From Guillardia theta CCMP2712 (lineage: Eukaryota > Protista > Cryptophyta): a stretch of 60,164 nt of DNA. The stretch spans positions 155,247 to 215,410 of the forward strand of contig NW_005434645.1 in the NCBI RefSeq assembly GCF_000315625.1, given 5' to 3'. Shown one piece after another: positions 12,848 to 58,077 of the stretch. The notes under the pieces were generated by a model. That model was not told where the DNA came from, ran no database searches, and was given only the letters and a program-made list of their open reading frames with translations. The stretch's first letter is position 1, and every line of letters begins with the position of its first letter. A program made the position numbers and the translations under genes.

Positions 12848-14717
12848 GGAGAAGAAGCAGGTGCAGGAGCAGGAGCAGGAGCAGGATCAGGGGAGAAGAA
12901 GCAGGTGCAGGAGCAGGAGCAGGAGCAGGGGAGAAGAAGCTGTATCATCTTGTTCACCTCGCCTCCTCGTCGAGCGGGTTGTTGGGAGCCACAAAGTGGG
13001 TGACGTCAGCGATGTGAACTCCCATCTCCACCCTCCCCTTCCCCAGCGGCTTCACGTGCAGAGCGTCGTCAATGTCCTTGCAGCCGGGGGATCGATGGAG
13101 CAAACCCTGGTGCAAAGGTCAGAGGAGGGATAGGAGGGAGAGTGAGGCGAGAAGAGGAGGAGCAGGGAGTTGTGGATCACTGGAAATGATATCTTCCTTC
13201 CATCCTCTCTCCCTTCGCTCTCCTCTCCCTCCCTCCCTCCCTCCCTCCCTCCCTCCCTCCCCTCCCTCCCTCCCCTTTTCCTTCCCTCCCCTCTCCACAC
13301 AACTCTTGCCCCACCTGTATCCCTCCCGCAGATCCACGCGCTTCCTGATCTCCTCCTCAGGCACCTCCCACTCCCCGTTGGGCCCGACGGGAGGAAGGAG
13401 CTTGAAGACAGCAGGAGCAAACTCTCGGATGCACACGTCGTGCTCGATCAAGATCACCTCGCTTTCGCACTGGATGTCCCCGATGTCCCCGATCGTCCTC
13501 ACGTAGTGCCCGCTGGGGAACTTCGAGTCTGCCTCCCACGAGTCGATCGCTACCAGGATCCTCTTCTCCAGCAGCTCCTCCACCTGCCGCGTGAAGATGC
13601 GGACCTTTGGGATCTGCTTGCTCACGGGAACGAACAGGACGTGCTTGTCTCTGGGGTTCAGGGGGGGCTCGATGCTGCCGCAAAATGGTCGCCATGCTCG
13701 CTTCATGATCCCCACGACCTTGGCCGTCGGTCGGAGGTCAACCTCACTCACTGTCTCCTCCTTGGCAGCGTCTTTCTCCTTCTCCTCCTCATCTAGCTCC
13801 TGTACGATCACCTGCCTCGGCGCCCTCCACTGATCCTTGGGTAGGATCTCGACTACAACCTTGTCCAGCTCCATCGCTCTGTTCAGGTTCAACCTGCCGG
13901 ATACCAGGAGGTCGCGGGAGCTGCTTCCTGTGTCCTTATCCTTCCCGTGCTTGTCGTCCTTCTTGGCACCGTGCCTCGTCTCCGTCGGAACCACCCAACC
14001 CTCCGTCGCGTTGTCACGAGCCATGTGCAGGGTCCCGATGACGAACCGACCCTGCCTGACCCCATCCTGGATCTCCATGGCGGAGAGATGAGGAGGATAG
14101 CTCACTTCCTTGCCGTCGGGCTTCCTCGCTGCATCCTCGTCCGCCTGATTCGTCGCCAGGTACTCGCTGTATTTGGCTGGGAGGTGCTCCTTGGTGAAGT
14201 CATGCACTGTGTAGCATGAAATCCCCTGCTCGATCGCTCTCGACCTGCAGTCTCTGTCGTTGGTCAGCAGGAAAACCTCCCGCTCTCCCTCGAGCTGCCT
14301 CTGGAACCATGCTGCAGCTACTCGGATGGCCCGGTCGTTGCAGTCGTTGGGGCTCTCTCCAGGAAGCTCCTTGACAAAGGTATCGTTGTGGTGCTCGTTG
14401 GCGAACACGAACACCCTCCTTCCGTGAGCTTGCGCCATGCCCTTCAACCTCTTGTACATGGCGAGGTTTCTATGCTTGACCTCCGACAGCACCGTCTGAA
14501 GCAGGATCACGTTGCTCAGCACACCCTCCGAAGTTGTCACTTCCAAGAAGTCCATCTGGTGGAGGGCGACATTGGTGTCTATCACCACACACCTCCCATC
14601 CGACCATCCGCCATCGGGCTCGGTAGGAAGATCATCTCGAAGGTAGTGCTCTCGTATCACTTTCTTGACAACTCCCCTCCTGGTTTTCTTGATGAAGATT
14701 TTGCTCTGCCGATCCAT
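9304..14717 (-). CDS. DIS3: Exosome complex exonuclease DIS3/RRP44 (multi-exon; part of the RNB domain falls in gaps)
   Basis: IREHYLRDD; PIN motifs [26 protein letters not shown]; cold-shock region [13 protein letters not shown] and [17 protein letters not shown]; RNB motifs [69 protein letters not shown]; S1 exon [20 protein letters not shown]; C-terminal PPKKKKKN. Confidence 0.95.
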
Positions 14718-32173: not shown

Positions 32174-34609
32174 TCAACAAGCAGCCTCTATCACCCACAC
32201 GTCCTCCACGTCTACCTCATCCAGGTCCTCCATATCGAACTGCGTGCTCGAGTCGACCAGCTTTCTCCACTCCTTCTCCGCCTCCTCTCCGCCGTTCCTC
32301 TTCCCGTCCTCCAACAGCTCCTTCCCTTCCTCAGGCTCGCACTGCACGCCCACCGACCGCATCTGCGACAACCTCCTCTGCACGTAGGCCTTCACAGCCT
32401 GCCCGTACATGGTCCGCAGCCTGTCAGTGAGCAGGACTGTGATGATGGGGGCGACAGAGGCGCAGGTGAGGATGCCGAACCCCTCCTGTGCGCTGGTGGC
32501 CTTGGAGAAGCCGATGCCGATGGAGAGGACGAACGGGACGGTCACGGGGCCCGTGGTAACTCCGGCGCTGTCCCAGGCGATGTTGGTGAAGTCCTCGGAG
32601 GCGAAGATGGTGAGGAGGGAGGCAGCCGCGTACTTGCCAAGGATCATGTAGATGATGTTGACCCCGAAGAGAATCTTGGAGGACCCTGCTACCATCCCGC
32701 ATCCTACTCCCACACACACGGTGTACACGAGCATGTTCGCGCCGAACTGTCCCCCGCTCAGAAGCTCCACCGTCTTTCCCATCACCCGCAGCGCGGGCTC
32801 TGCGCGGGTGGCGAGGAAGCCAAGGACGAAGATGGTGACCATGACGATGGCGATGCCGGGGCCCTTGGCGTAGTAGGGGGAGCCGGGGAAGCTACTGGTC
32901 TCGAGGAAGGCGGAGGGGAGGAGGACTCCGCTCTGGTCACCGAGGGCGGTGAAACCGAAGCTGAGCCCGATGTTGAAGAGCGTCATGCCCATCTGAGACT
33001 CCAGGATGCCCAGCAGCAGAGAACTCTGTGCCCTCACCTTCTGCCAGAGAGAAAGTTTCACCTCCTTCTCCCCCTCCTCCTCCTCCTCGTCGTCCACAAC
33101 CAAGACCGACTCCTGCCTCCTGGTGATCCTCCCGTGGGGGTTGGAGGAGGTTCGGCCGAGCATCCCCACGGCGTTGGCGATCCTCTCTCTCCTCTCCTGC
33201 TTGCACTCCCTCCGCTGCTGAGTTCGGAACTCATTGATGCGCTTCTTGATCTTGGAAGAAATCTCCTCGTGCGTATTCTTATCCGCATCACGGAAGCACT
33301 CCAAGTTGCGGAACTCAGCGTAGCTGATCTCCCCGTCGTCGTCGAGATCGATCGAGGTGAAAAGGTCCTCCTTCTCATGCTCCTCGATGCCAATCTCCAG
33401 GCAGTCCACGGCATGGAAGAACTGCTCCTTGGTGATCGTCTCCGAGTTGTTGTCGTCGAGGCACTTGAAGAACGAGTACAGCTTGTCGGAGTGGTTGTTG
33501 AGGTCGGGGAGCAGCCCTGCCGGCGGCTGCACCTCGAACGAGATCTTGGGCAGCGGCTTCCACAGCACCAAGACGATCATGATGATCAGGAAGACGTTCA
33601 GGGGCAGGATGGAGCGGATGGCGAAGGTGAAAGCGCTCAGCACGAGCTGCGCATCTGTCTCCTTCACCTCCAGTCCAGTCTCCGTCCCGTTGAGCTGCGA
33701 GCAGTCGATCTTCCCGAAGTCTGTCCTGATGTCCTCCGACGAGTACCGCAGCGAGATGAAGATTGACATCAGCTCCACTGCGAGGATAGGGAACGTAGAC
33801 GCCAGCGTTATAATCCCAAAGCCCTCGAGCGCCTTTCCCTTGTTCTTCCCCGCCTGCTGCTCCAGCACGTCTCTGGCGTCCCTTCTCGCCGCGCTCCCTT
33901 TCATCACACCGATCCCGAGAGAGAGCAGGATCGGGACGGTCACCGGCCCTGTCGTCACTGCCCCGCAGTCCCACGCCAACCCAATCAGAGGGGATAGCTC
34001 GGGATTGCCCCACTTCATGTAGCACGCGCACGCGATGGTGGGGGAGAGGCCAAGGGCGATGAGCGGCTTCAGGGACCAGTTCCTAAGGAACCTCAGCACC
34101 CCGATCATCGCCGCTACCCCAACCCCCAGCCCGATGGACAGGACGAGGATCTCCGACATATCGTTGAGCACGAAGAAAAGGTAGGGGGTGTCGCATCGCT
34201 TCACCAGGTTGGCAAGAGGCCTCAAGCTCGCAATCGCAGGCTCTGCATACGTGACGAGGATGCCGATGGCGCATGCGACGACCAGGATGTACCTCACCTT
34301 GAACTGCTCCGGCAGCTGCTGGCCCAGAAGGCTGCCCAGCGGCATGATGGCGACGCGGAGGCCATCGACGAAGAGAACAAGGCCGACCATGGCGGAGATG
34401 AGGCCTCCAGCTAAGGTGCCGGGGGAGTTGACGGTGCGCTGGAAGTAGATTCCGATGGTGATCACAAGGCACAAGGTGATGGGGACTACCGCCAGCACTT
34501 GCTCGTAGAATTGAAGGATATAGTAGAAGAACAGAGCCCGAGCCGGCGCTTTCCAATGCATTCGATCCCTAAGAAACTTGTCGGTACGGCCATATAGTTT
34601 TTGTATCAT
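32174..34609 (-). CDS. Membrane protein with two DUF1538 domains and an EF-hand pair between them (uninterrupted ORF)
   Basis: Two homologous halves carry AEPAI/AEPAL and AWDCGAVTTGPVTVP / AWDSAGVTTGPVTVP (DUF1538 signature) with many hydrophobic helices. EF-hand loops DDNNSETITKEQF and DLDDDGEISYAEF. First ATG in the ORF is at 34609; upstream exons are possible. Confidence 0.85.
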   Translation of the reverse strand: MIQKLYGRTDKFLRDRMHWKAPARALFFYYILQFYEQVLAVVPITLCLVITIGIYFQRTVNSPGTLAGGLISAMVGLVLFVDGLRVAIMPLGSLLGQQLPEQFKVRYILVVACAIGILVTYAEPAIASLRPLANLVKRCDTPYLFFVLNDMSEILVLSIGLGVGVAAMIGVLRFLRNWSLKPLIALGLSPTIACACYMKWGNPELSPLIGLAWDCGAVTTGPVTVPILLSLGIGVMKGSAARRDARDVLEQQAGKNKGKALEGFGIITLASTFPILAVELMSIFISLRYSSEDIRTDFGKIDCSQLNGTETGLEVKETDAQLVLSAFTFAIRSILPLNVFLIIMIVLVLWKPLPKISFEVQPPAGLLPDLNNHSDKLYSFFKCLDDNNSETITKEQFFHAVDCLEIGIEEHEKEDLFTSIDLDDDGEISYAEFRNLECFRDADKNTHEEISSKIKKRINEFRTQQRRECKQERRERIANAVGMLGRTSSNPHGRITRRQESVLVVDDEEEEEGEKEVKLSLWQKVRAQSSLLLGILESQMGMTLFNIGLSFGFTALGDQSGVLLPSAFLETSSFPGSPYYAKGPGIAIVMVTIFVLGFLATRAEPALRVMGKTVELLSGGQFGANMLVYTVCVGVGCGMVAGSSKILFGVNIIYMILGKYAAASLLTIFASEDFTNIAWDSAGVTTGPVTVPFVLSIGIGFSKATSAQEGFGILTCASVAPIITVLLTDRLRTMYGQAVKAYVQRRLSQMRSVGVQCEPEEGKELLEDGKRNGGEEAEKEWRKLVDSSTQFDMEDLDEVDVEDVWVIEAAC

Positions 34610-36124
34610 GTTGCCAAAACAAGACAATCTCCGCTACACGTGTAACAGTTGGAAAGCAATCCGAAGATCTCACACGTCCACAGGAGATGTCAACACTTGC
34701 ATCAACCAGATCCGCACTCGGAGCCAAGAAAGCAACTTGTTACAGCTGGAATCAGAATGACAGCAGTCTTTCAAATCGATGCGAGCGTATGAATCAGGAT
34801 AGATGAATGCCTTGAAAGTGTTGAGGAAGACCCAAAGCTGGAGTGTGTAGCGGAGTAAGGGGAGGAACGAAACTACCTGAACGAAGAGAACCAAGAGGAG
34901 AGCAAGAAGGAGGATGCACAGAAGTAGCGAGGATGCAAGAATGGAGCGGAAGAAGGCGGAGAAAGGGGATGACGCCAAGACAAATCGCGCGACTGATGGC
35001 CTCTGGTAGGGATCAAACCATCGTCGGCATTGGCGTTCGAAACGTAAGTGTGTTTTTAGGGGTGGGGTGCAATTCTTGACGGTGGGGTACATGAAGTCTA
35101 GGTAAGGGTTCTATTCCTGATATTTTGTGGGAAAGAGGGGGTAGGGTGATGAAGGAAGGGGGTGGGTATCATGCTGGGTCCGATTGTGTAGCAGCCGCAC
35201 AATAAAATGTATGTAGCAGAAACTTGTAGGTGGGGTCATTCCAAACAAGGGGTAGTAGTTTACAGAGCATTTGAAACCTCTTCATATGACCCCCCTTTGC
35301 TCATTAAAATGAGGGGTACAAGAATGAATGTTCCAAATTCGTGTGGGTAGGGTGACGAGTTGTAGGGTATACATACTGGTGGGGGTACATTTGAAGCCCA
35401 GGGGGTGTAGACGGGTGGGGTAGTGTCCCTGGGTCTATGACCACCGAAAAAAAACAGTGGGGGACTATCAAGCCCGAGCCCCACGGGGGTGGGGTAATGC
35501 CACCGGTGAATTCAAAAATCTCCAGGAATGTATGGGTAGGGTACTCTGAAACATGGAAATGACCGGGTAGTATGGCAGAACAAGGTAGTCAGTGGGTGGG
35601 TATCATCTCTCAGGGGTATGTTTGCTACACCTCAACCTAAGGAGAGGGGTCCATTCCACATTTCCTGGAGCAGGAGGGGGTGGTGAACAGGAGTTGAGGG
35701 GTTTAGGGGGGTGGTCACGGACTTTGGGTAGTGATAGTCCGATACAGGTACGAGTTGGGCCCCCAGGCGCCGGCCCTCAGGTCCGATGAGCCCGCCTCAC
35801 TCACGCTGCCGCCGCCGCGGTGACTCTGATTTTCACTCACGAGTCACTGAGCGGCGGCCGCGGTGACCGCATTTCGAGTCTAGCATCGNNNNNNNNNNNN
35901 NNNNNNNNNNNNNNNNNNNNNNNNNNNNNNNNNNNNNNNNNNNNNNNNNNNNNNNNNNNNNNNNNNNNNNNNNNNNNNNNNNNNNNNNNNNNNNNNNNNN
36001 NNNNNNNNNNNNNNNNNNNNNNNNNNNNNNNNNNNNNNNNNNNNNNNNNNNNNNNNNNNNNNNNNNNNNNNNNNNNNNNNNNNNNNNNNNNNNNNNNNNN
36101 NNNNNNNNNNNNNNNNNNNNNNNN

Positions 36125-47730: not shown

Positions 47731-48216
47731 GGCAGGAGCCATGATGGCCGGACAGCCTTGGCCGCCACGTTGTGCCATGTTGACTCACAATGTGCTTCTT
47801 AAACACGTTCCCGACCTCTCTTCCCCCTGATCCTGTTGGAGGAGGTGAGATGACAGATGTATACAGAGTTTGCCTTTGGTACACCTTCCTAGCTTATCTA
47901 CACTCCTTGCAGCGATCCCCCGCACAACTAATCGTTCTGGCATTCCGAGGGGGGGGGGGCGGCCGTGCCCGGCCCGGTGGGCGGCCGTGCCTCAGGGGCC
48001 AGGATGCAGCCGCCAGAGGCTGCCCCGGCCCGCGAGGCGCCTCGGCTCAGCCGGGCTCGGACCGACTGACCGTGACTCACTGTCAAGCAAGGCCTTGCTA
48101 CATACTCGGAAGCCTTTTATGTACGTCTCTGACGCTTCTGCTTATGAGTACCTGAGCCTATTCCTACGGATACTTTGAGCTTCAAGTACTGGACAGTGAA
48201 AGCCACTCAGCGCCCA

Positions 48217-51200
48217 TCACAAGCTTCCCCACACGAGCACTGTGGTGTCGTCTGATCCTGATACAAGCATGCTGCCGTCCTCCGACCATGCGACATCAGT
48301 CACGCTCTTGGTATGTCCTCGAAAGCACTTGATCTCCTTCCCGCTCCTCGCCTCCCACACCCTCACCGTGCAGTCGGATGATCCTGAGGCGAGAAAGCTC
48401 CCGTCCCTTGTCCATGCAAGGCAGGTGACGCTTCCTTCATGTCCCGTGCAGCAGCTCACTCTCCTGCCGCTGCTCATCTCCCACACCCTCACAGTCTTGT
48501 CCTCTGACCTCGACGCGAGCATGCTCCCGTCTCTCGACCATGCCACACCAGTGACTTGGTCCTGATGTCCCTTCAGCCACCGCCACTGCTTGCTGCTCCT
48601 CACTTCCCACACCCTCACAGTGAAGTCCGATGAACCTGCAGCTAACAACTTGTCATCCTGAGACCACGTCGCATCTGTGACTATCACGAGATGCTCTTCA
48701 AAGCATCTCAACATCTCGCCGCTGCTCATGTCACATACACTCACTTGCCCTTCAGACGTGTGGGTCGCAAGCATGCTCCCATCGTTTGACCAAGCAATGC
48801 GCGTCAATCTGTGTCCTTGCAAGCATCTGATTTGTTTACAGCTGCTTCTCTCCCACACCCTGACCGAGCTGTCCCATGACAAGGCAGCGATCAACTTGCC
48901 ATCCTTCGACCACGCAACCTTTCTGACAACAGATACGTTTCCCTCAAAGTGTCCTATCTCCTTCCCGCCAGGTTCTTCCCATGCTCTGACCGTGAAGTCG
49001 GATGCTCCTGCAGCTATCATCATGCCCCCTTCTTCAGACCACATAACGCTTATGATACTGTTTTCATCTTCTTCCGTGCACCACACCTCGTTGCCGCTGC
49101 TTGCCTCCCATGCTCTGACCGTACCGTCCGATGACCCCGCGACCATCCAGTCTTGGTAGCGCCCGCTCACATTCGTCAAGGCGAGGCACGTGATGCTGCT
49201 GCCTTGTCCCTTGAAGCACCATACCTGCTGGCCGCTGCTTGGCTCCCATGCTCTGACCGTACCGTCCGATGACCCCGCGACTATGCGGTATTGGAAGCTC
49301 TCGCTCACGTTCAAGCTAGTCAAGGCGAGACACGTGATGCTTCTGCCTTGTCCCTTGAAGCACCATACCTCGTTGCCGCTGCTTGCCTCCCATGCTCTGA
49401 CCGTACCGTCCGATGACCCCGCGACTATGCGGTATTGGTAGCGCCCGCTCACATACAAGCTAGTCAAGGCGAGACACGTGATGCTTCTGCCTTGTCCCTT
49501 GAAGCACCGTACCTCGTTGCCGCTGCTTGCCTCCCATGCTCTGACTGTACCGTCCGATGACCCCGCGACTATCCAGTCTTGGTAGCTCCCGCTCACGTTC
49601 AAGCTGATCGAGGCAAGGCACGTGATGCTGCTGCCTTGTCCCTTGAAGCACCATACCTGCTGGCCGCTGCTTGGCTCCCATGCTCTGACCGTACCGTCCG
49701 ATGACCCCGCGACTATCCAGTCTTGGTTGCTCCCGCTCACGTTCAAGCTAGTCAAGGCGAGGCACGTGATGCTGCTGCCTTGTCCCTTGAAGCACCATAC
49801 CTCGTTGCCGCTGCTTGCCTCACATGCTCTGACCGTACCGTCCGATGACCCCGCGACTATGCAGTATTGGTTGCTCCCGCTCACGTTCAAGCTAGTCAAG
49901 GCGAGGCACGTGATGCTGCTGCCTTGTCCCTTGAAGCACCATACCTCGTTGCCGCTGCTTGCCTCACATGCTCTGACCGTACCGTCCGATGACCCCGCGA
50001 ATATGCAGTATTGGTAGCGCCCGCTCACGTTCAAGCTGATCGAGGAGAGGCACGTGATGCTGCTGCCTTGTCCCTTGAAGCACCATACCTGCTGGCCGCT
50101 GCTTGCCTCCCATGCTCTGACCGTACCGTCCGATGACCCCGCGACTATGCAGTATTGGTAGCTCCCGCTCACGTTCAAGCTGATCGAGGCAAGCAACGTG
50201 ATGCTTCTGCCTTGTCCCTTGAAGCACCGTACCTCGTTGCCGCTGCTTGGCTCCCATGTTCTCAACGCGGCATCATCTGTCAGTGCTGCAATCACTTCCA
50301 GTTTCGGAGAGACCATTACGTTCTTGATCTTGCTTGTATGATCTGTAAAACATCTGATCTCTCCCCATGTCGTATACACACTCGCATCCTCCCTTGCAAA
50401 TGGTGAGCTGGTTAGGACCGGATTGACCCTTGAATGCAAATGTCTGTTGATTGATGTTTCAACTCTTGCTTGGTCTACTTTCACTGTCAGCACATCTTCA
50501 CTATCTGACAAACACTCACCTGCTGATGTGCGGGGGGGTAAAGGGGGCAACATCTGGTTGCGGTCTACGAGCAAACTGATGGCTACAGCAGCAGCAGTCG
50601 GCCTAGTCAACTCATCGTAGTCTAGACAGCATAGGGAGAGCTGCTTCCACACTTGATCGCCTGGCAACCCTTTCAACACTTCAGCTTGCTCCTCTCTGCT
50701 TGCTGGCGGCTTCTCTCTGGTCATCACATACATCATGACAAGACCGAGGGAGTACACATCCGACGCAAAGCTCGCAGTCCCTCCCGTCCTTTGCTTTGGG
50801 GACATCCAGCACAAGTCTCCTTGCTTCACCGACCCTGTCGCCCTCGCGATCAGCTGCCTTGTCTTGTGGAGCTCAAACCCCACGAGCTTCGCCATGTCGT
50901 CAGCCTCAACCATCACATTTTTCGGCTGCAAGTCTCCGTGTACCATGCCGAGCAAATGCAGGTACGCAAGCCCGTTCGCCAGCCCTTGGATCACCGCACG
51001 CCCTCGAGCCTCTTGCTCGCTCGCATCGGCAGGTTTGAGAATCAGGTCCACGAAGCGATCGAGGGGCTGCTGCTGCATCTCCGTCAACAGCAGGTACCAA
51101 GGGTCTCCATGCTCGTCCGACAGGATGGCGCCGACAAGGCGAACGACGTTGAGGTGAGACATGCTGAACAGAAGCTTCGTCTCTCGCAAGAACTCCTTGC

Positions 51201-51915
51201 GCATCGATACATCGCCGTCAAACACTTGCGGGTCGTGTGGCTCCAGCACCGCTACCTCAGCTCCCTCATACCTCGCATGGTATACCACTGCGAAGCCTCC
51301 CGTGCCGAGGATCCGCTTCGGCTTCCCTCGACCAGATGTCTCCACCTGAAGCTTCGAAGGGTCGAGCGCCCATGCTTGCTCCTCTGCCTGACTTACATCT
51401 CCATCTACAGCTGCTTTCATCTTGCTGTAAGTGGGATTGTTTCCAAACATGAGCTTTTCTACCTCCTCTCCCTCCTCCCCAGCAACATACCCAGCAAGAG
51501 CACGCATGAGCCTTTGCACTACTGAGAAAACTTCCGACCTCTTGCCTGCTAGCTCAGCCTCAAGCTTGCTCGTGCTTCCAAGCAAACGATCTAAGGGAAG
51601 AGGCTCGCCCGAACGGGTCTTGCCTTTCTTCTGGATGAACACACGCAGGGCGGATAGGATGCAGCAAAGCTCATTGATGGCAACATCAACGAGGCCCTTG
51701 ACCTCCTTGTCGAGTTGTTGGTACTCTTGACGGAGCAGAGGGTCAACAATCTCCTTCACTTCGATCGCAAGATCGCGGAGCTCCTTCTGGTTGTTGGACA
51801 CCACGTGCGCCTCTTGCCACAGGCTGACCAGGTTTGATCGTATCAATACAAGAACATCTGACATGTCGGATAACCTGGGAAAAGATATCAGATATCGATC
51901 GAAGGAGCTCAACAT
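48217..51915 (-). CDS. MLKL-like four-helix bundle + pseudokinase + ~16 WD40 repeats (intronless, 1232 aa)
   Basis: N-terminal helical region (aa ~18-140) patterned like MLKL-NTD/HeLo. Kinase fold with GTGGFAVVY, but VAVL for VAxK, HGDLQPKN, and KLVGFELHKT for DFG. Then 1 + 8 near-identical + 7 divergent WD40 repeats (GH..VT.VAWS.DG..LASGS.D.TVRVWE). Confidence 0.85.
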   Translation of the reverse strand: MLSSFDRYLISFPRLSDMSDVLVLIRSNLVSLWQEAHVVSNNQKELRDLAIEVKEIVDPLLRQEYQQLDKEVKGLVDVAINELCCILSALRVFIQKKGKTRSGEPLPLDRLLGSTSKLEAELAGKRSEVFSVVQRLMRALAGYVAGEEGEEVEKLMFGNNPTYSKMKAAVDGDVSQAEEQAWALDPSKLQVETSGRGKPKRILGTGGFAVVYHARYEGAEVAVLEPHDPQVFDGDVSMRKEFLRETKLLFSMSHLNVVRLVGAILSDEHGDPWYLLLTEMQQQPLDRFVDLILKPADASEQEARGRAVIQGLANGLAYLHLLGMVHGDLQPKNVMVEADDMAKLVGFELHKTRQLIARATGSVKQGDLCWMSPKQRTGGTASFASDVYSLGLVMMYVMTREKPPASREEQAEVLKGLPGDQVWKQLSLCCLDYDELTRPTAAAVAISLLVDRNQMLPPLPPRTSAGECLSDSEDVLTVKVDQARVETSINRHLHSRVNPVLTSSPFAREDASVYTTWGEIRCFTDHTSKIKNVMVSPKLEVIAALTDDAALRTWEPSSGNEVRCFKGQGRSITLLASISLNVSGSYQYCIVAGSSDGTVRAWEASSGQQVWCFKGQGSSITCLSSISLNVSGRYQYCIFAGSSDGTVRACEASSGNEVWCFKGQGSSITCLALTSLNVSGSNQYCIVAGSSDGTVRACEASSGNEVWCFKGQGSSITCLALTSLNVSGSNQDWIVAGSSDGTVRAWEPSSGQQVWCFKGQGSSITCLASISLNVSGSYQDWIVAGSSDGTVRAWEASSGNEVRCFKGQGRSITCLALTSLYVSGRYQYRIVAGSSDGTVRAWEASSGNEVWCFKGQGRSITCLALTSLNVSESFQYRIVAGSSDGTVRAWEPSSGQQVWCFKGQGSSITCLALTNVSGRYQDWMVAGSSDGTVRAWEASSGNEVWCTEEDENSIISVMWSEEGGMMIAAGASDFTVRAWEEPGGKEIGHFEGNVSVVRKVAWSKDGKLIAALSWDSSVRVWERSSCKQIRCLQGHRLTRIAWSNDGSMLATHTSEGQVSVCDMSSGEMLRCFEEHLVIVTDATWSQDDKLLAAGSSDFTVRVWEVRSSKQWRWLKGHQDQVTGVAWSRDGSMLASRSEDKTVRVWEMSSGRRVSCCTGHEGSVTCLAWTRDGSFLASGSSDCTVRVWEARSGKEIKCFRGHTKSVTDVAWSEDGSMLVSGSDDTTVLVWGSL
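49080..50258. repeat. Eight ~144-bp (48-aa) high-identity WD40-coding tandem repeats
   Basis: Unit VWCFKGQGSSITCLALTSLNVSGSNQYCIVAGSSDGTVRAWEASSGNE repeats with limited substitutions; the last unit lacks 2 aa. Confidence 0.95.
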
Positions 51916-52142
51916 GAGGTTAACAGGAATGAATGCTCGTCGAATAGCAGATTAAAGGGTTTGCCTCAAATACTATTCACTCCTGAGCAGCTACGTATAC
52001 CTCTCTTCGTGGGAAAATATTCTTTTCAAATCAAGATCAGGAAATGATTTGTCCTACTCTTCTCTCCCCGATCTTATGATCTTTGCTCTCTTCTAGAAAT
52101 ACTACTATACTCTGATGTACATAAATATTCCGGTGAGTCGTA

Positions 52143-52822
52143 TAGTCTTGTAGTCTTGTAGTCTTGTAGTCTTGTAGTCTTGTAGTCTTGTAGTCGTGTA
52201 GTCGTGTAGTCTTGTAGTCGTGTAGTCGTGTAGTCTTGTAGTCTTGTAGTCGTGTAGTCGTGTAGTCGTGTAGTCGTGTAGTCTCCTGGTCATGTAGTCG
52301 TGTAGTCGTGTAGTCGTGTAGTCTTGTAGTCTTGTAGTCTTGTAGTCTTGTAGTCGTGTAGTCTCCTGGTCATGTAGTCGTGTAGTCGTGTAGTCTTGTA
52401 GTCTTGTAGTCGTGTAGTCGTGTAGTCTTGTAGTCTTGTAGTCTTGTAGTCTTGTAGTCGTGTAGTCTCCTGGTCATGTAGTCGTGTAGTCTTGTAGTCT
52501 TGTAGTCGTGTAGTCTTGTAGTCTTGTAGTCTTGTAGTCTCCTGGTCATGTAGTCTTGTAGTCTTGTAGTCTTGTAGTCGTGTAGTCGTGTAGTCTTGTA
52601 GTCTTGTAGTCTCCTGGTCATGTAGACTTGTAGTCGTGTAGTCTCCTGGTCATGTAGTCGTGTAGTCTTGTAGTCTTGTAGTCGTGTAGTCTTGTAGTCG
52701 TGTAGTCTTGTAGTCTTGTAGTCTTGTAGTCTCCTGGTCATGTAGTCTTGTAGTCTTGTAGTCTTGTAGTCTCCTGGTCATGTAGACTTGTAGTCTTGTA
52801 GTCTTGTAGTCTTGTAGTCTTG
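52143..52822. repeat. 8-bp minisatellite (TAGTCTTG/TAGTCGTG with TAGTCTCCTGGTCATG variants)
   Basis: ~680 bp of tandem octamers; the 16-nt variant keeps the 8-bp register. Confidence 0.95.
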
Positions 52823-54302
52823 TATGTTGCGAGGTAGCTTCATGCTTGACCGAGCTCTCCTTCCAAAAGCTGCAGCCGCGGTGATCCACTCCTACTCCAC
52901 CCCTCCAGTATATCCTAAACACCCCCCCCCGCTCCCCCCCCCCCTCCCTTGTATACCAGATCCACCCCTCCGACAGATTGGGCCTATCTCGGTGACTGTG
53001 CCTCATGCCGGTTCAATGCAGCGAGTGCGAGGTGCTGCAGCTGCTGATGCTCCCGCGCCTTCACCTGCTTGTGCGACAGGTGTACATCGAGAGAGGAACG
53101 AGCGACTCGTCGAAATGCGTAAGCCTTGTGCTGTCGCTTCTTGTGCAGCTGACTTGAGCGAGGAGGCGGTGAGCATGTCTTGAATCGACCATTGTTGGGT
53201 TCTTTCCTTGAACTCTGGTTGGGTTAACGAGCATGACTGACTGAATGTACTGACAGTATGTGAGTTACTTGGACGAGCATGAGCAACTTGCCTGTCCCTC
53301 ACTCTCACCCGTTGTCGCATGTACGCACTCGACCTCTCGGCTTCATTCGGTTTCCAGCGGGTAAACATGACGAAGAGGAGGCGGAGAGGAGGTGGGATGG
53401 GGTGGAGGGGGAGGAGAGGAGAGGAGAGGAGAGGAGACACTTACTACATGCTGGTTATCGTTATCGGTATATGCGTGTGGCGGACTCGCGTGGCTGTTGG
53501 GGCTGGTAGTGGGTGAGTGAGAGGGAGGAAGGAAGAGGAGGCGAGGGCTGACTGAAGACTTCGATGCCGCATGGAACAATTGTTGGACTGTGAACCGAGA
53601 AGGCGGTGAGATGAGAAACAATCGCTATTTGGAGCTCTGACGAAAGTTGTTGATATGGGTGTTTCGGATTCTGAATGATTCGTTGAGGAAATGCAGCGGG
53701 TGAGTTGAAACAGTCAGTTACAAGCCAATGAGATGAGACTGACACATGATCTGCTGTTTCGAACTTGTGATCCGGTGGACATGTTTCGAACAGAACGTGA
53801 GTGCTAGAATTAGAGACGTTGATTCATTCATCGCAAAGATGCTGACCCGAACTTTGATTCTTTCATGTCACTTGGGGGAATGCGTTTGGGATCGGGACGA
53901 CAACAGCTGGTGAGAATGCGAGAGGAAGAGGAGCCGATCGTCAAGAGTCTGAAGTGATTGCTCTGGTACTTGCTGTCATGGGATCGCGGGGACTGCGGGG
54001 CGAAAGCGAGTGAGGATTCCACAAGAGAGGGGAGAAGAGACTGACGGATCGACCTTTCTGACATGCGATACCTTGACGGATGGATGCTTCGGATGCCTCG
54101 ACAGGAAGTCAGTTACATGTGCTTGTGGTTGTGATGGGGTTGGGGAAGGGGGGGTGGGAGGGGGGGCACACAGAGTCAGAGAGACACTGGGTGCAGTCGG
54201 GAAGGAGGATGTGGGGATTGAGGAGGATGCTCTGAAACGAAGCCTCACTGACTGATTGTTCCTCATGTATCGCTTGTAATCGCAATGGGTGCTTGTCGAC
54301 AG

Positions 54303-57300
54303 GCGGTATTTGCATCTGTGTGGCTTGATAGGAGGGATGAATGACTCGCGTCTGTTGTATCAAATGGTGATTTCTTACGGATCATTCGGTAACGTCACTT
54401 ACAGCGGGTACATGGCCGATCTTTAACTTGTCCTGCTTCTGACTAGTTTTCTTTGTTTTTTCCTTGTTCTTGACATGACAGTGTTGTGTAAGTTCTATCT
54501 CCAAGGAATCTTCATTTTCAATGACGAAACAAATTGCATACTCGAGAGACTGTCGCTGAGATGTTATCTTTCAGAATGTGAGTCCACACACTTGTCCCGA
54601 TTGCCTTTAGTCCCAGTCCGTGACAAGATGTGTTTCAGTGCCTCAAGATAAGCGGATGGCCCGATTATGATGAGGTGAATCGAGAGCGAAGGTGATGTCT
54701 AAAGCAACTGAACAACATGTGTGTTGTAGGATGGGTGTGAGTTGTGCAAGCAACGACGGGAGATAGAGTCGAAGCAACAAGATTTTTGGGAGAAGGAGAA
54801 GCAGAAGAAGGAGGAGCGAGAGGAGCGAGATCGATTGAAGAACCTAGACAGGTGCTGCACAATACGGCGAGCCGTGCAACTGGCGACTCGTCATTGGAGA
54901 ACAGCTGAGAGCAAAGGCGGGTACACACTGCAGCTGGATGAAGTGACCGCAAGGTTCTGCTGCCAAGAGTTCGAAGTTGGACAGGACGCTCACGACCTTG
55001 TGCTTGCATTGATCGACCACCTGAAAGGCGAGGAGCATGAGGCGTACAGTCATGTGCGCATGGCTTGGCAGCACGTGAGGTCGCAGGAGAACAGACATGT
55101 CGCCATGCAAGCTGAAGTGATGAGATGTGTGAGCGAAGAGAGCGAGGAAAGAGGAGGATCACTGAGCGAAGTCATCAAGAAGCGCGACAATGCCCGGCAG
55201 GAGCTGATAAGAGCATACCATCAGCTCGTAGAGACTCTGACTGAACAACGTCAGGAGACTTTGAAAGTTTTCGCGACAAGTCTCGAGCAGTTCGCCTGTT
55301 CAGCAGGCAATCTGCTGGACTACCTGAGACGAGGCGGATCTGTTGCCTTGCCGGGCCCCGATGAGCCAGAGGACGGGCTTGCAAGTCAGTCGTCGCTCTC
55401 GTCTGAGCATCTCCGAACGCAGGCAGAAGGAGCGACATCCAGAGTTTCTCAGTGGGTTCAGGGTGTTTGTGCAAGGTTGACCGCGGCGAGACAGGAGCGA
55501 GAGGAACAAGCTCAAGTCTACGCTGAGGGACTTCGGCGACTCTCATGCTTGTTGGACGGAAGTGACTCAGATCTCAGTGTCGAGGAAGCAACGAAGCTCG
55601 AGCGCTCACTCCCGGAGGTGCACATGGCGCTGGAGAGCATGTACCTGTCCGAAGAGGAAGTCTGGTCTGACCAGTCGCTGATCCACTCGTTTCCCATGCG
55701 CGACCTCGTGGAAGTGCTGCAGATGTCTTGTGCATGGGGACAGGAGGTGCTGTTCAACTTAGATCAGATGTGCAAGGTTGAAAGCGTCAAGGCCAAGGTG
55801 GTTGAACTCGAGGGCCTGCATGACCCTGAGGAGCTTCTCGAAAGGCGCACGGAGCTCAAGAAGGCAAGAGACGATGCGGAAGACGAGCTGCTGGACCTGC
55901 GGACTCCCCTGGAAAAGCTGCAGAGGAGAAGGCTTTCAACTCAGGAGCTTGAAGAGAAGATTGAGAAGGTGAGAAAGCAGCTGCTACTTGCCGTGAAGGA
56001 GCTAGAGGTTCAAGAAGATCGCCTATGGAGGCTTCTTCACTTCTACCCCGAGTACACGAGGCACCTCAAGGAGGCAGTGGAAGGAGAGAGCGTCGGATTG
56101 CCCGCAAGCTACGAGAAGTTTGACATGTTCGAGGTGGTCGAACGGTTGTCGCAAGCCGGGCACATGGGCAACCGTCACAATGTGTTCCGAGTGAGGCAGG
56201 GGGAGGAGGAGTTTGTGATCAAGGAGTACAGCCTGATGGAGGGGCAGCGAACGCGGAAGCGCTTCATGCTAGAAGCGAGCATTCTGCATCGCCTGGAGCA
56301 CCCTTACCTAGTCAGACTTAGCAGCGCGTTCGTGGAGGAGAGGCACGAGCATGGTGTTATGACCGTGAAGGGGTACCTTAAGATGCCCTTGTACGTCGGT
56401 GGGAGCCTGTGGAGCTGGATGCTGCGAGCGAAGCCGAGCAAGCAGCAGAAGCATCGGGTGCTGGCGCAGATCTTGCAGGGGATGGAGCATCTGCGACAGA
56501 ACCGGATCATCCACTGCGACATCAAGCCAGCAAACATCCTCATGACCAGCAATCACGAGCGAGCAGAGCCCAAGATTGCCGACTTCGACGTCTCGAGGGA
56601 GCAGGAGGACCACACGAGGGACTTGATCGCGACAGTGACGGCTACACAAGTTGTTGGGACGCTCACGTACATGGCACCAGAGCTGGTGGACCCGACCATG
56701 GCCAAGCGGAGAGCGTCACACAAGTCAGACATGTACTCATACGGGTTGGTGGTGGCAGAGTTCCTGACGGAGACAGCGCGACAGGAGGGGACGCGAGACA
56801 TGAGAGGAATGATTGGAGCGCTTGAGGACGAGGCTCGAGACCTCGTGGTCAAGCTGCTCGACGCCGATCCTCGCATGAGACCGTCTGCAGCTGAGGCCCT
56901 CACTCACCCGTATTTCAATCACTCCATGATCCTGGAGCGAGAGCAGGTCGAGAAGCAGCGCAAGGAGTTGCGAGAGCAGCATGACTCGGAGCTGGCAAAG
57001 GTCTTGAGCCAGCAGGAAGAGCTGGCGAGGCAGGAGAGGGAGGTCGACCTACAGAGGCAGCGGGTGCATGAGGAGGAGAAACAGCTGCTGCACCAGCAGA
57101 GGCAGCTGATGGCGCGAGGAGAGCAACTCGAATCTGAGGCCTTGTCAAGAAAGCTGCAGCTGCAGAAGGAAAAGGCTGAGATCACTCAGAAAGAAAACCA
57201 GCTGAGGAGTCAGCAGAAGAAGCTTGTGTCAGAGCTCAAGACTCTCAGTAGACAAGAGGCAGAGCTCGATCTTAAGGCAAAGGACGTCGAAGCTGAGAAA

Positions 57301-58077
57301 CTGCTGCTCGCAGACGATCGCGCGCAGTTCCATCCTCCCGTGTACTGGCAGCGGGTCAACCTGCATGGCCCCGTCAGTGTGAGGGTGAAGGTGGACGTGA
57401 CGCGGGAGTGGAAAGATAGGGTGCAAGAGCTGATGACGTCCACGTGTATCCAGCAGTACATCGGGCAGGGCAGAGACAACCAGGGCCTGACGCATAAGGG
57501 ATACAGGGTAGAGCGAGTGTTCCACATCCAAGACCGCAGCCTCTGGTTACCCTTCGCTGTCCAGCGCAAGAATGCCAGCCGATGGATCATGGAGTCGAGG
57601 AGGAGCCGTCCTAAGACCAAGGTGAGTACATGGCGAGACTGGATGAAGCGCGAGCTGCTCCAAGACAAGACGAGCAACGAGGTCTTTCTCTTCCACGGCA
57701 CTCGGCAGAACGTGGTTGACGCTATCCTGTCCTGCGGGCTCGACGAACGAGTCTGCAGCATGGGAGGCTTGTTCGGAGCTGGCATCTACCTCGCCGAGAA
57801 CTCCAGCAAGAGCGACGAGTACTGCGTGCCGGATGCCCGAGGCATCTGCTCCATGTTCCTCGTCCGGGCAGTGCTGGGCATGCCTTATGAAGCCGAGCAT
57901 CCGATGCCCAACACAAGGCTTCCTCCTGCGAGCGCGGACTCCCGTCCTCACGACTCGGTCATAGGAGTCACCCGCAGCACTCACCCGTCCGCCTTCCTGC
58001 ACAAGTACCGAGAGTTCATCGTCTACGACAGGCGGCAGACGTACCCCGAGTTTCTGATCGAGTTTAGGAGAGTGTGA
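54303..58077 (+). CDS. Coiled-coil Ser/Thr protein kinase fused to a tankyrase-like PARP catalytic domain (main exon 54730-58077; short 5' exons; start codon not found)
   Basis: Kinase motifs [62 protein letters not shown] motifs [51 protein letters not shown] (H-Y-E triad). Confidence 0.9.

Follow-up and report, generated by a model that had tools for sequence, protein, structure and literature searches.

An expressed bundle–pseudokinase–WD40 gene of the cryptophyte Guillardia theta with a GFE motif apparently convergent with that of MLKL

The gene, its transcript and its predicted domains

The window analysed here is a 60,164-nucleotide (nt) stretch of Guillardia theta CCMP2712 (contig NW_005434645.1), and all coordinates are positions in this stretch. 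It carries on its minus strand a gene whose product is laid out, from the N- to the C-terminus, as a four-helix bundle, two brace-like helices, a pseudokinase domain, an array of near-identical WD40 units and a set of divergent WD40 repeats (Table 1). The interpretation that we hold to be somewhat probable is that of an expressed bundle–brace–pseudokinase–WD40 protein from a cryptophyte family, with a convergent GFE motif, in which sensor, switch and effector would be joined in a single chain.

Contigs from three public runs, originating from different studies, match the gene without differences, and one of them reaches past position 52100. The three runs had only been guessed to be RNA; they derive from cDNA, since the contigs are both spliced and polyadenylated. 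The intron that they skip is the only one seen in the gene and is free of stop codons; its retention would lengthen the kinase–WD40 linker by 15 residues and leave the protein unbroken. In a certified RNA-seq run just five reads fell on the gene in a sampling of about 6% of the run, so that expression in that run is low. The gene is transcribed, spliced and polyadenylated. Two in-frame ATG codons lie at its 5′ end (Table 1), and no ATG was read on the minus strand between 52100 and 51915.

A kinase domain was placed by Pfam at residues 200–432 (PF07714, 1.2e-24, 87.5–92.1 bits; PF00069, 3e-24, 86.3–91 bits; both above the cut-off). Because of this placement, with which the family alignment (A4) agrees, the motif sites in Table 1 are the true β3, catalytic-loop, DFG and APE positions. 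The original prediction had described VAVL, HGDLQPKN, GFE and SPK in a pseudokinase; all four were read directly on the minus strand within one open reading frame (ORF), and both the β3 Lys and the DFG Asp are gone, on which grounds the domain is predicted to be a pseudokinase. The GFE codons are GGG TTT GAG, against GAC TTT GGG in the DFG-bearing paralogs. Ser and Thr residues are present in the activation segment, and the Thr that follows GFE is not conserved in the paralogs.

The closest solved relatives were RTKC8, EphA2, IRAK4 and CTR1 for the window kinase domain and CTR1, IRAK4, B-Raf and ZAK for the family kinase profile, and MLKL was not within the best 60 in either search. Neighbours of the domain in the Atlas were generic kinases. 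A word-indexed homolog search with the full ORF (region 1–480) likewise returned generic kinases only, at 26–33% identity over the kinase half, and no bundle–kinase–WD40 relative of 678–2156 residues. By these comparisons the domain appears to be a generic tyrosine-kinase-like (TKL) one with no preferential likeness to MLKL.

About 17 WD40 repeats were recognized by Pfam after the kinase domain (PF00400, 1.6e-87). When eight of the 48-residue units were compared with their consensus, 59 nonsynonymous and seven synonymous differences were counted; a shifted unit and a partial one inflate the nonsynonymous figure. At set positions the units switch between a small number of recurring alternatives (NE/QQ, A/P, LT/SI, YC/DW/YR and S/R). 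NACHT and NB-ARC domains were absent from a Pfam scan of the whole protein, which gave only kinase and WD40/propeller families. By analogy, the variable array resembles the recognition arrays of the fungal HET-E/NWD NOD-like receptors (NLRs). Of the built-in sensor domain put forward in the original prediction, the fusion stands, the WD40 array being C-terminal in the same transcript; a sensing role would follow by analogy.

The N-terminus of the window protein (190 residues) matched no Pfam family at E values up to 10, and a word-indexed homolog search with it (region 1–195 of a 482-residue piece) gave no matches. An AlphaFold2 (AF2) model built on the 20-sequence family alignment (mean predicted local distance difference test, pLDDT, 79.6; predicted template-modelling score, pTM, 0.70) consists of four long helices followed by two brace-like ones, that is, the four-helix-bundle fold with a two-helix brace found in vertebrate MLKL; residues 18–140, where the N-terminal stretch cited in the original prediction is indeed located, are helical in two AlphaFold2 models. 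In the structural comparison by Foldseek against the PDB the human MLKL executioner domain ranked first (6zvo_A, prob 0.97, template-modelling score, TM, 0.66 by target), with 2msv, 6zz1, AtMLKL3 (6ka4) and AtMLKL2 (6lba) as further matches. Among natural proteins, the MLKLs of human, mouse and Arabidopsis resemble the modelled fold best. TM values were 0.42–0.66 for MLKL and AtMLKL and below 0.35 for all remaining matches; the E values of the search were weak (0.67). A VIA alignment on the human MLKL N-terminal domain extends to model residue 156. NRG1 CC-R and Rx-CC were also among the structural matches of the bundle. A homo-oligomer prediction with four copies of residues 18–177 scored 0.00, which counts neither for nor against oligomerization.

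When the 20 family N-termini were scanned singly, Pfam MLKL_N (PF22215) was matched by seven, one of them above the cut-off of 27 bits (P0010, the best, 28.4 bits; P0002, 26.5 bits). No other Pfam family was matched by more than one of the 20; a single member matched RPW8 (3.6e-6, below the cut-off). Language-model neighbours of the N-terminus carry MLKL_N, and its structural neighbours in the Atlas are DUF7792, DUF7032 and PigL_N bundles fused to armadillo (Arm) repeats or to fungal STAND-type modules. Three kinase-less, bona fide MLKL_N proteins are encoded elsewhere in the genome (loci L017 on contig C451, L018 on C93 and L019 on C341; 36.7–46.2 bits, above the cut-off). An hhalign comparison with these proteins gave a P value of 0.004 in the expected register with a probability of 8.5%, the comparison alignment being shallow: a search seeded with the genome's bona fide MLKL_N protein had yielded just two Hanusia phi fragments. 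As side observations, MLKL_N forms the C-terminal end of proteins of ~28-residue tandem repeats on C451 and C341, and the L019 copy appears to be frame-shifted inside the domain. Against PDB sequences P0010 gave no matches, and the top match of the family N-terminal profile was Prp19 (E 0.0046), a coiled coil that was regarded as a chance match; MLKL was absent.

The N-terminus is best explained, on the models, as an MLKL_N/HeLo-type four-helix bundle with brace-like helices. Its membership of the HeLo/MLKL_N/RPW8 bundle superfamily is considered likely, short of proof for the window's own sequence. The MLKL-NTD/HeLo pattern that had been claimed for it is supported by the modelled fold and by the profile matches of relatives; the window sequence itself has no Pfam match.

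Table 1. Features of the bundle–pseudokinase–WD40 gene in the window
Feature	Position	Strand	Basis and remarks
Coding region	48217..51915	-	Single uninterrupted ORF of 1232 residues, 1217 after removal of the 45-nt intron; ORF list, spliced translation
First ATG	51913-51915	-	Adds 17 N-terminal residues to the start at M18
Second in-frame ATG (M18), candidate start	51862..51864	-	Relatives from other organisms all begin here (alignments A1, A2)
Four-helix bundle (predicted)	51496..51864	-	Helices 2-21, 26-44, 53-81 and 90-123 counted from M18; ORF residues 19-140
Two brace-like helices (predicted), bundle–kinase link	51385..51477	-	Residues 130-140 and 144-160 counted from M18; AF2, block pLDDT 69-83
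Pseudokinase domain (predicted), TKL-like	50530..51318	-	PF07714, PF00069; approximately ORF residues 200-462
Leu (CTG) for the β3 (VAIK) Lys, in VAVL	51244..51246	-	Private to the window copy
Catalytic loop HGDLQPKN	50917..50940	-	Catalytic Asp and Asn kept; Arg to Gly, Lys to Gln
GFE for DFG, inside KLVGFELHKT	50872..50880	-	Direct reading, GGG TTT GAG
SPK for the family SPE (APE position), in W-M-S-P-K	50794..50802	-	Private to the window copy
Intron, 45 nt, GT..AG, in frame, in the kinase–WD40 linker	50475..50519	-	Skipped exactly by contigs of three runs (X1, X4, X6)
Near-identical WD40 units	49078..50262	-	TRF; 48 residues (144 nt), 8.3 copies, 91% identity
About seven ordinary divergent WD40 repeats, C-terminal	48220..49077	-	PF00400 1.6e-87, propeller families, repeat parse
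Stop codon	48217-48219	-	The only stop in the spliced translation, terminal
3′ untranslated region up to the poly(A) site	48103..48216	-	T run as a loose end before 48103, one X1 contig

The gene family and the origin of the GFE motif

The genome assembly (87.1 Mb, 669 contigs) was searched for the N-terminal domain of the family, with seven matches by single-sequence search and nine by profile. In the labels used here, C-numbers are contigs, with the window gene on C29, and P- and L-numbers are family members or loci. The members in the genome are the window gene, its two nearest paralogs on C112 and C99 (66–69% identity), a four-gene cluster on C23 (38%) and one gene each on C44 and C51. At least nine genes of this genome belong to the family, as do one gene of the cryptophyte Proteomonas sulcata and a few on metagenome contigs; only 17 relatives came out of an exhaustive HMMER profile search that covered 1.84 billion representative proteins. 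Full-length relatives outside the genome likewise consist of the N-terminal domain and a kinase. On these searches the family appears to be small, narrowly distributed and centred on cryptophytes.

The C-terminal repeats vary within the family: WD40 ORFs directly follow seven of the nine genome members, and C44 and C51 carry armadillo-like repeats. The C23 cluster (G000:C23:60172-75999; L022, L025) holds four bundle–kinase–WD40 genes, including a pair duplicated in inverted, head-to-head orientation (64456-65907 minus, 66486-67946 plus). L015 (G000:C44:298081-) and L016 (G000:C51:-309191) combine this bundle with a canonical kinase and carry the armadillo-like repeats in place of WD40. The metagenomic member P0017 shows weak ARM matches, an echo of the plant DUF7792/DUF7032-Arm structural neighbours.

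Canonical motifs were kept by all ten members outside a three-gene clade formed by the window gene, C112 and C99; the members named with such motifs are the four C23 genes, C44, C51, P0001, P0004, P0012, P0015 and P0017. They read VAVK or VAIK at β3, HRDIKPxN in the catalytic loop (HRDITPQN in one C23 copy, HKDIKSQN in C51), DFG (DLG in three C23 copies) and SPE or APE. The four C23 kinases (VAVK, HRD, DFG or DLG) look catalytically competent by their motifs. GFE and HGDLQPKN also occur in C112 and C99, which nevertheless keep the β3 Lys (VVVK) and SPE; both read GFELVKV, without the Thr after GFE. The K-L-x and L-x-K flanks of GFE are ordinary TKL context, the paralogs reading KLIDFGLSK.

The window gene, C112 and C99 grouped as a single GFE clade (100/100) in a maximum-likelihood tree; the C23 cluster is the sister group of this clade (91/94), which lies inside the DFG-bearing family. 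From the motifs and the tree, the ancestral kinase was canonical. In the three-gene clade DFG became GFE, with loss of its Asp, and HRD became HGD; in the window copy the β3 Lys was lost as well and SPE became SPK, which makes this copy a young pseudokinase. GFE was acquired once, recently and within this lineage, and is convergent with that of MLKL, because the GFE clade is nested among DFG- and DLG-bearing members. Of the two origins first offered for the GFE architecture, deep MLKL homology or convergence, the motifs and the tree thus bear out the second; GFE is no sign of the first. The ratio of nonsynonymous to synonymous substitution rates (dN/dS) against C112 and C99 was 0.20–0.29 in both the bundle and the kinase, so the dead kinase is still under purifying selection and is not decaying; its non-catalytic core is conserved in alignment A4.

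Divergently oriented at 54742-58077 (plus strand), 2.8 kb upstream of the gene, lies an ORF of 1111 residues, a possible functional partner, in which a canonical protein kinase (PF00069, 7e-41) is joined to a PARP catalytic domain at the C-terminus (PF00644, 1.4e-22). An 8-nt tandem repeat at 52143-52824 (consensus TAGTCTTG, ~85 copies, 86% matches) takes up a large part of the sequence that separates these two genes and yields spurious repeat ORFs of the TTRLHDYK type. A Dis3/Rrp44-like exoribonuclease fragment with PIN and CSD domains (13119-14717, minus) and a DUF1538 protein with EF-hands (32174-34627, minus) are ordinary neighbours. Except for the divergent kinase–PARP gene, no immune-type gene clustering was seen in the rest of the window, the others being the Dis3-like gene, the DUF1538/EF-hand gene and unannotated ORFs.

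Proposed function and its alternatives

The mechanism proposed starts from the domain order, the expression, the derived pseudokinase state and the continued constraint described above, and is modelled on MLKL, on the plant MLKLs (10.1101/681015) and on the fungal HeLo proteins (PMC10197012, PMC12881547). The WD40 propellers, with their near-identical units and variable positions, may bind a ligand or a partner. Such binding would alter the conformation or the oligomeric state of the pseudokinase and brace, which would act as the switch; alternatively, this change would be brought about by a still-active paralog, or by a different kinase, that phosphorylates the activation segment. Either event would free the bundle to act on a membrane and cause ion flux or the death of the cell, after the pattern of MLKL, the plant MLKLs and the fungal HeLo proteins.

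The gene could alternatively be a true deep orthologue of MLKL, with bundle, brace, pseudokinase and GFE inherited jointly with the animal protein. The equal domain order, the identical GFE with eight of ten surrounding residues matching human MLKL, and the MLKLs as the best structural matches of the bundle would fit this origin. We consider it very improbable, since the GFE clade is nested among ten members with DFG or DLG, VAVK and HRD (HKD in one copy), the two nearest paralogs read GFELVKV and keep the β3 Lys, and the flanks of GFE are common TKL context; in addition, CTR1, IRAK4 and B-Raf lead for the kinase profile with MLKL outside the best 60, and the catalytic loop is HGD, not HGK. 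For GFE itself the orthologue reading is already largely refuted. Equally improbable is a decaying duplicate, a redundant paralog without a role of its own in which catalytic residues were lost under relaxed selection. The window copy does have more catalytic-motif losses than its paralogs and few raw RNA reads (five in ~6% of one true RNA-seq run), but its 3.7-kb frame is intact, a spliced and polyadenylated transcript is present in contigs of several studies, dN/dS is 0.20–0.29 against both paralogs in both domains and the non-catalytic kinase core is conserved.

The N-terminal helices might instead be a generic helical or coiled-coil module for regulation or dimerization, attached to a signalling scaffold of pseudokinase and WD40 repeats that acts neither on membranes nor in cell death. 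For this reading it counts that scaffolds built on TKL pseudokinases are common, that the window sequence has no direct Pfam match and a low hhalign probability, and that many unrelated and designed proteins reach middling structural scores against helical bundles. On the other side, MLKL_N is the sole family matched repeatedly across the members, once above the curated cut-off; Foldseek sets MLKL and AtMLKL (TM 0.42–0.66) apart from the rest (<0.35); independent language-model and Atlas neighbours fall in the same superfamily; and, as in MLKL, the domain opens the protein and precedes a brace and then a kinase. A generic module is judged unlikely on balance, while being the alternative that we take most seriously.

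Animals (MLKL), seed plants and some fungi have four-helix-bundle executioner domains linked to pseudokinases. The origin of this architecture, and whether its pseudokinase state is ancestral, are unsettled. The present family would extend MLKL-like architecture to cryptophytes. In one protist genome the bundle–brace–kinase plan is found both with kinases that look active and with one that was inactivated recently, in a way that reproduced the GFE of MLKL. Bundle proteins with working-looking kinases (the C23 cluster, C44 and C51) stand there as a series beside the young GFE pseudokinase offshoot, and offer a natural comparison set for the effect of the DFG to GFE change on the switch. In the window protein a WD40 array of the fungal-NLR recognition kind is combined with a kinase domain at the place where NLRs carry the nucleotide-binding oligomerization domain. 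Should the bundle prove lytic, the protein would be a candidate receptor for immunity or for regulated cell death in a single-celled alga. More speculatively, and as a possibility that we hold to be rather doubtful, the genome might be a living series of the path to MLKL-type killers, with the window gene as receptor, switch and executioner: its WD40 array would recognize a virus- or microbe-derived ligand, its bundle would trigger regulated lytic death of the alga and the active paralogs would possibly be RIPK3-like activators. The literature searched gave no description of such a family in cryptophytes, of its fusion to WD40 repeats or of active members occurring beside inactivated ones.

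Comparison with known systems

The closest parallel in plan is vertebrate MLKL, which shares the N-terminal four-helix bundle, the brace helices, a dead kinase domain of the TKL group and GFE in place of DFG. Around this motif the window protein reads KLVGFELHKT and the human protein KLAGFELRKT, with eight of the ten residues matching. The GFE described here arose independently of that in MLKL; the window protein has HGD, with the Asp and Asn kept, and a β3 Leu, whereas MLKL has HGK and keeps K230; a WD40 region of ~750 residues follows the kinase, whereas MLKL ends at the kinase; and the kinase resembles CTR1, IRAK4 or Raf at least as closely as it does MLKL. We know of no RIPK3 or RHIM partner for the window protein. 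Human MLKL is documented with GFE for DFG, an HGK catalytic loop and the β3 K230 kept (PMC5104457), and its activation segment reads VKLAGFELRKTQTS (peptide, PMC12377765); the human strings given in the original prediction were right where they could be compared with these two sources.

The plant MLKLs (AtMLKL1–3) have a HeLo-type bundle, a five-helix brace, a pseudokinase and a serine-rich tail, and are immune-related proteins of seed plants (Mahdi et al., bioRxiv 10.1101/681015). They share bundle, brace and pseudokinase with the window protein, and AtMLKL3 and AtMLKL2 are among its best fold matches. They differ in carrying the serine-rich tail where the window protein has a WD40 array, and the latter has active-looking kinase relatives in the same genome. 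The RPW8/CC-R and coiled-coil (CC) domains of plant NLRs belong to the same helical-bundle superfamily, but are fused to NB-ARC-LRR and not to a kinase and WD40 repeats.

In fungi, HELL domains are fused to kinase or pseudokinase domains (PMC12881547), and HeLo-NACHT-WD40 NLRs of the HET-E/NWD type combine a HeLo bundle with a C-terminal WD40 array (PMC12881547, PMC10197012). The predicted HeLo-type N-terminal effector bundle is common to these proteins and the window protein, as is a kinase or pseudokinase in some of them. With the HeLo-NLRs the window protein further shares a WD40 array of highly similar units in which variation is focused on a few positions. It departs from them in its cryptophyte lineage and in having no NACHT or NB-ARC domain, the central place being taken by a kinase or pseudokinase.

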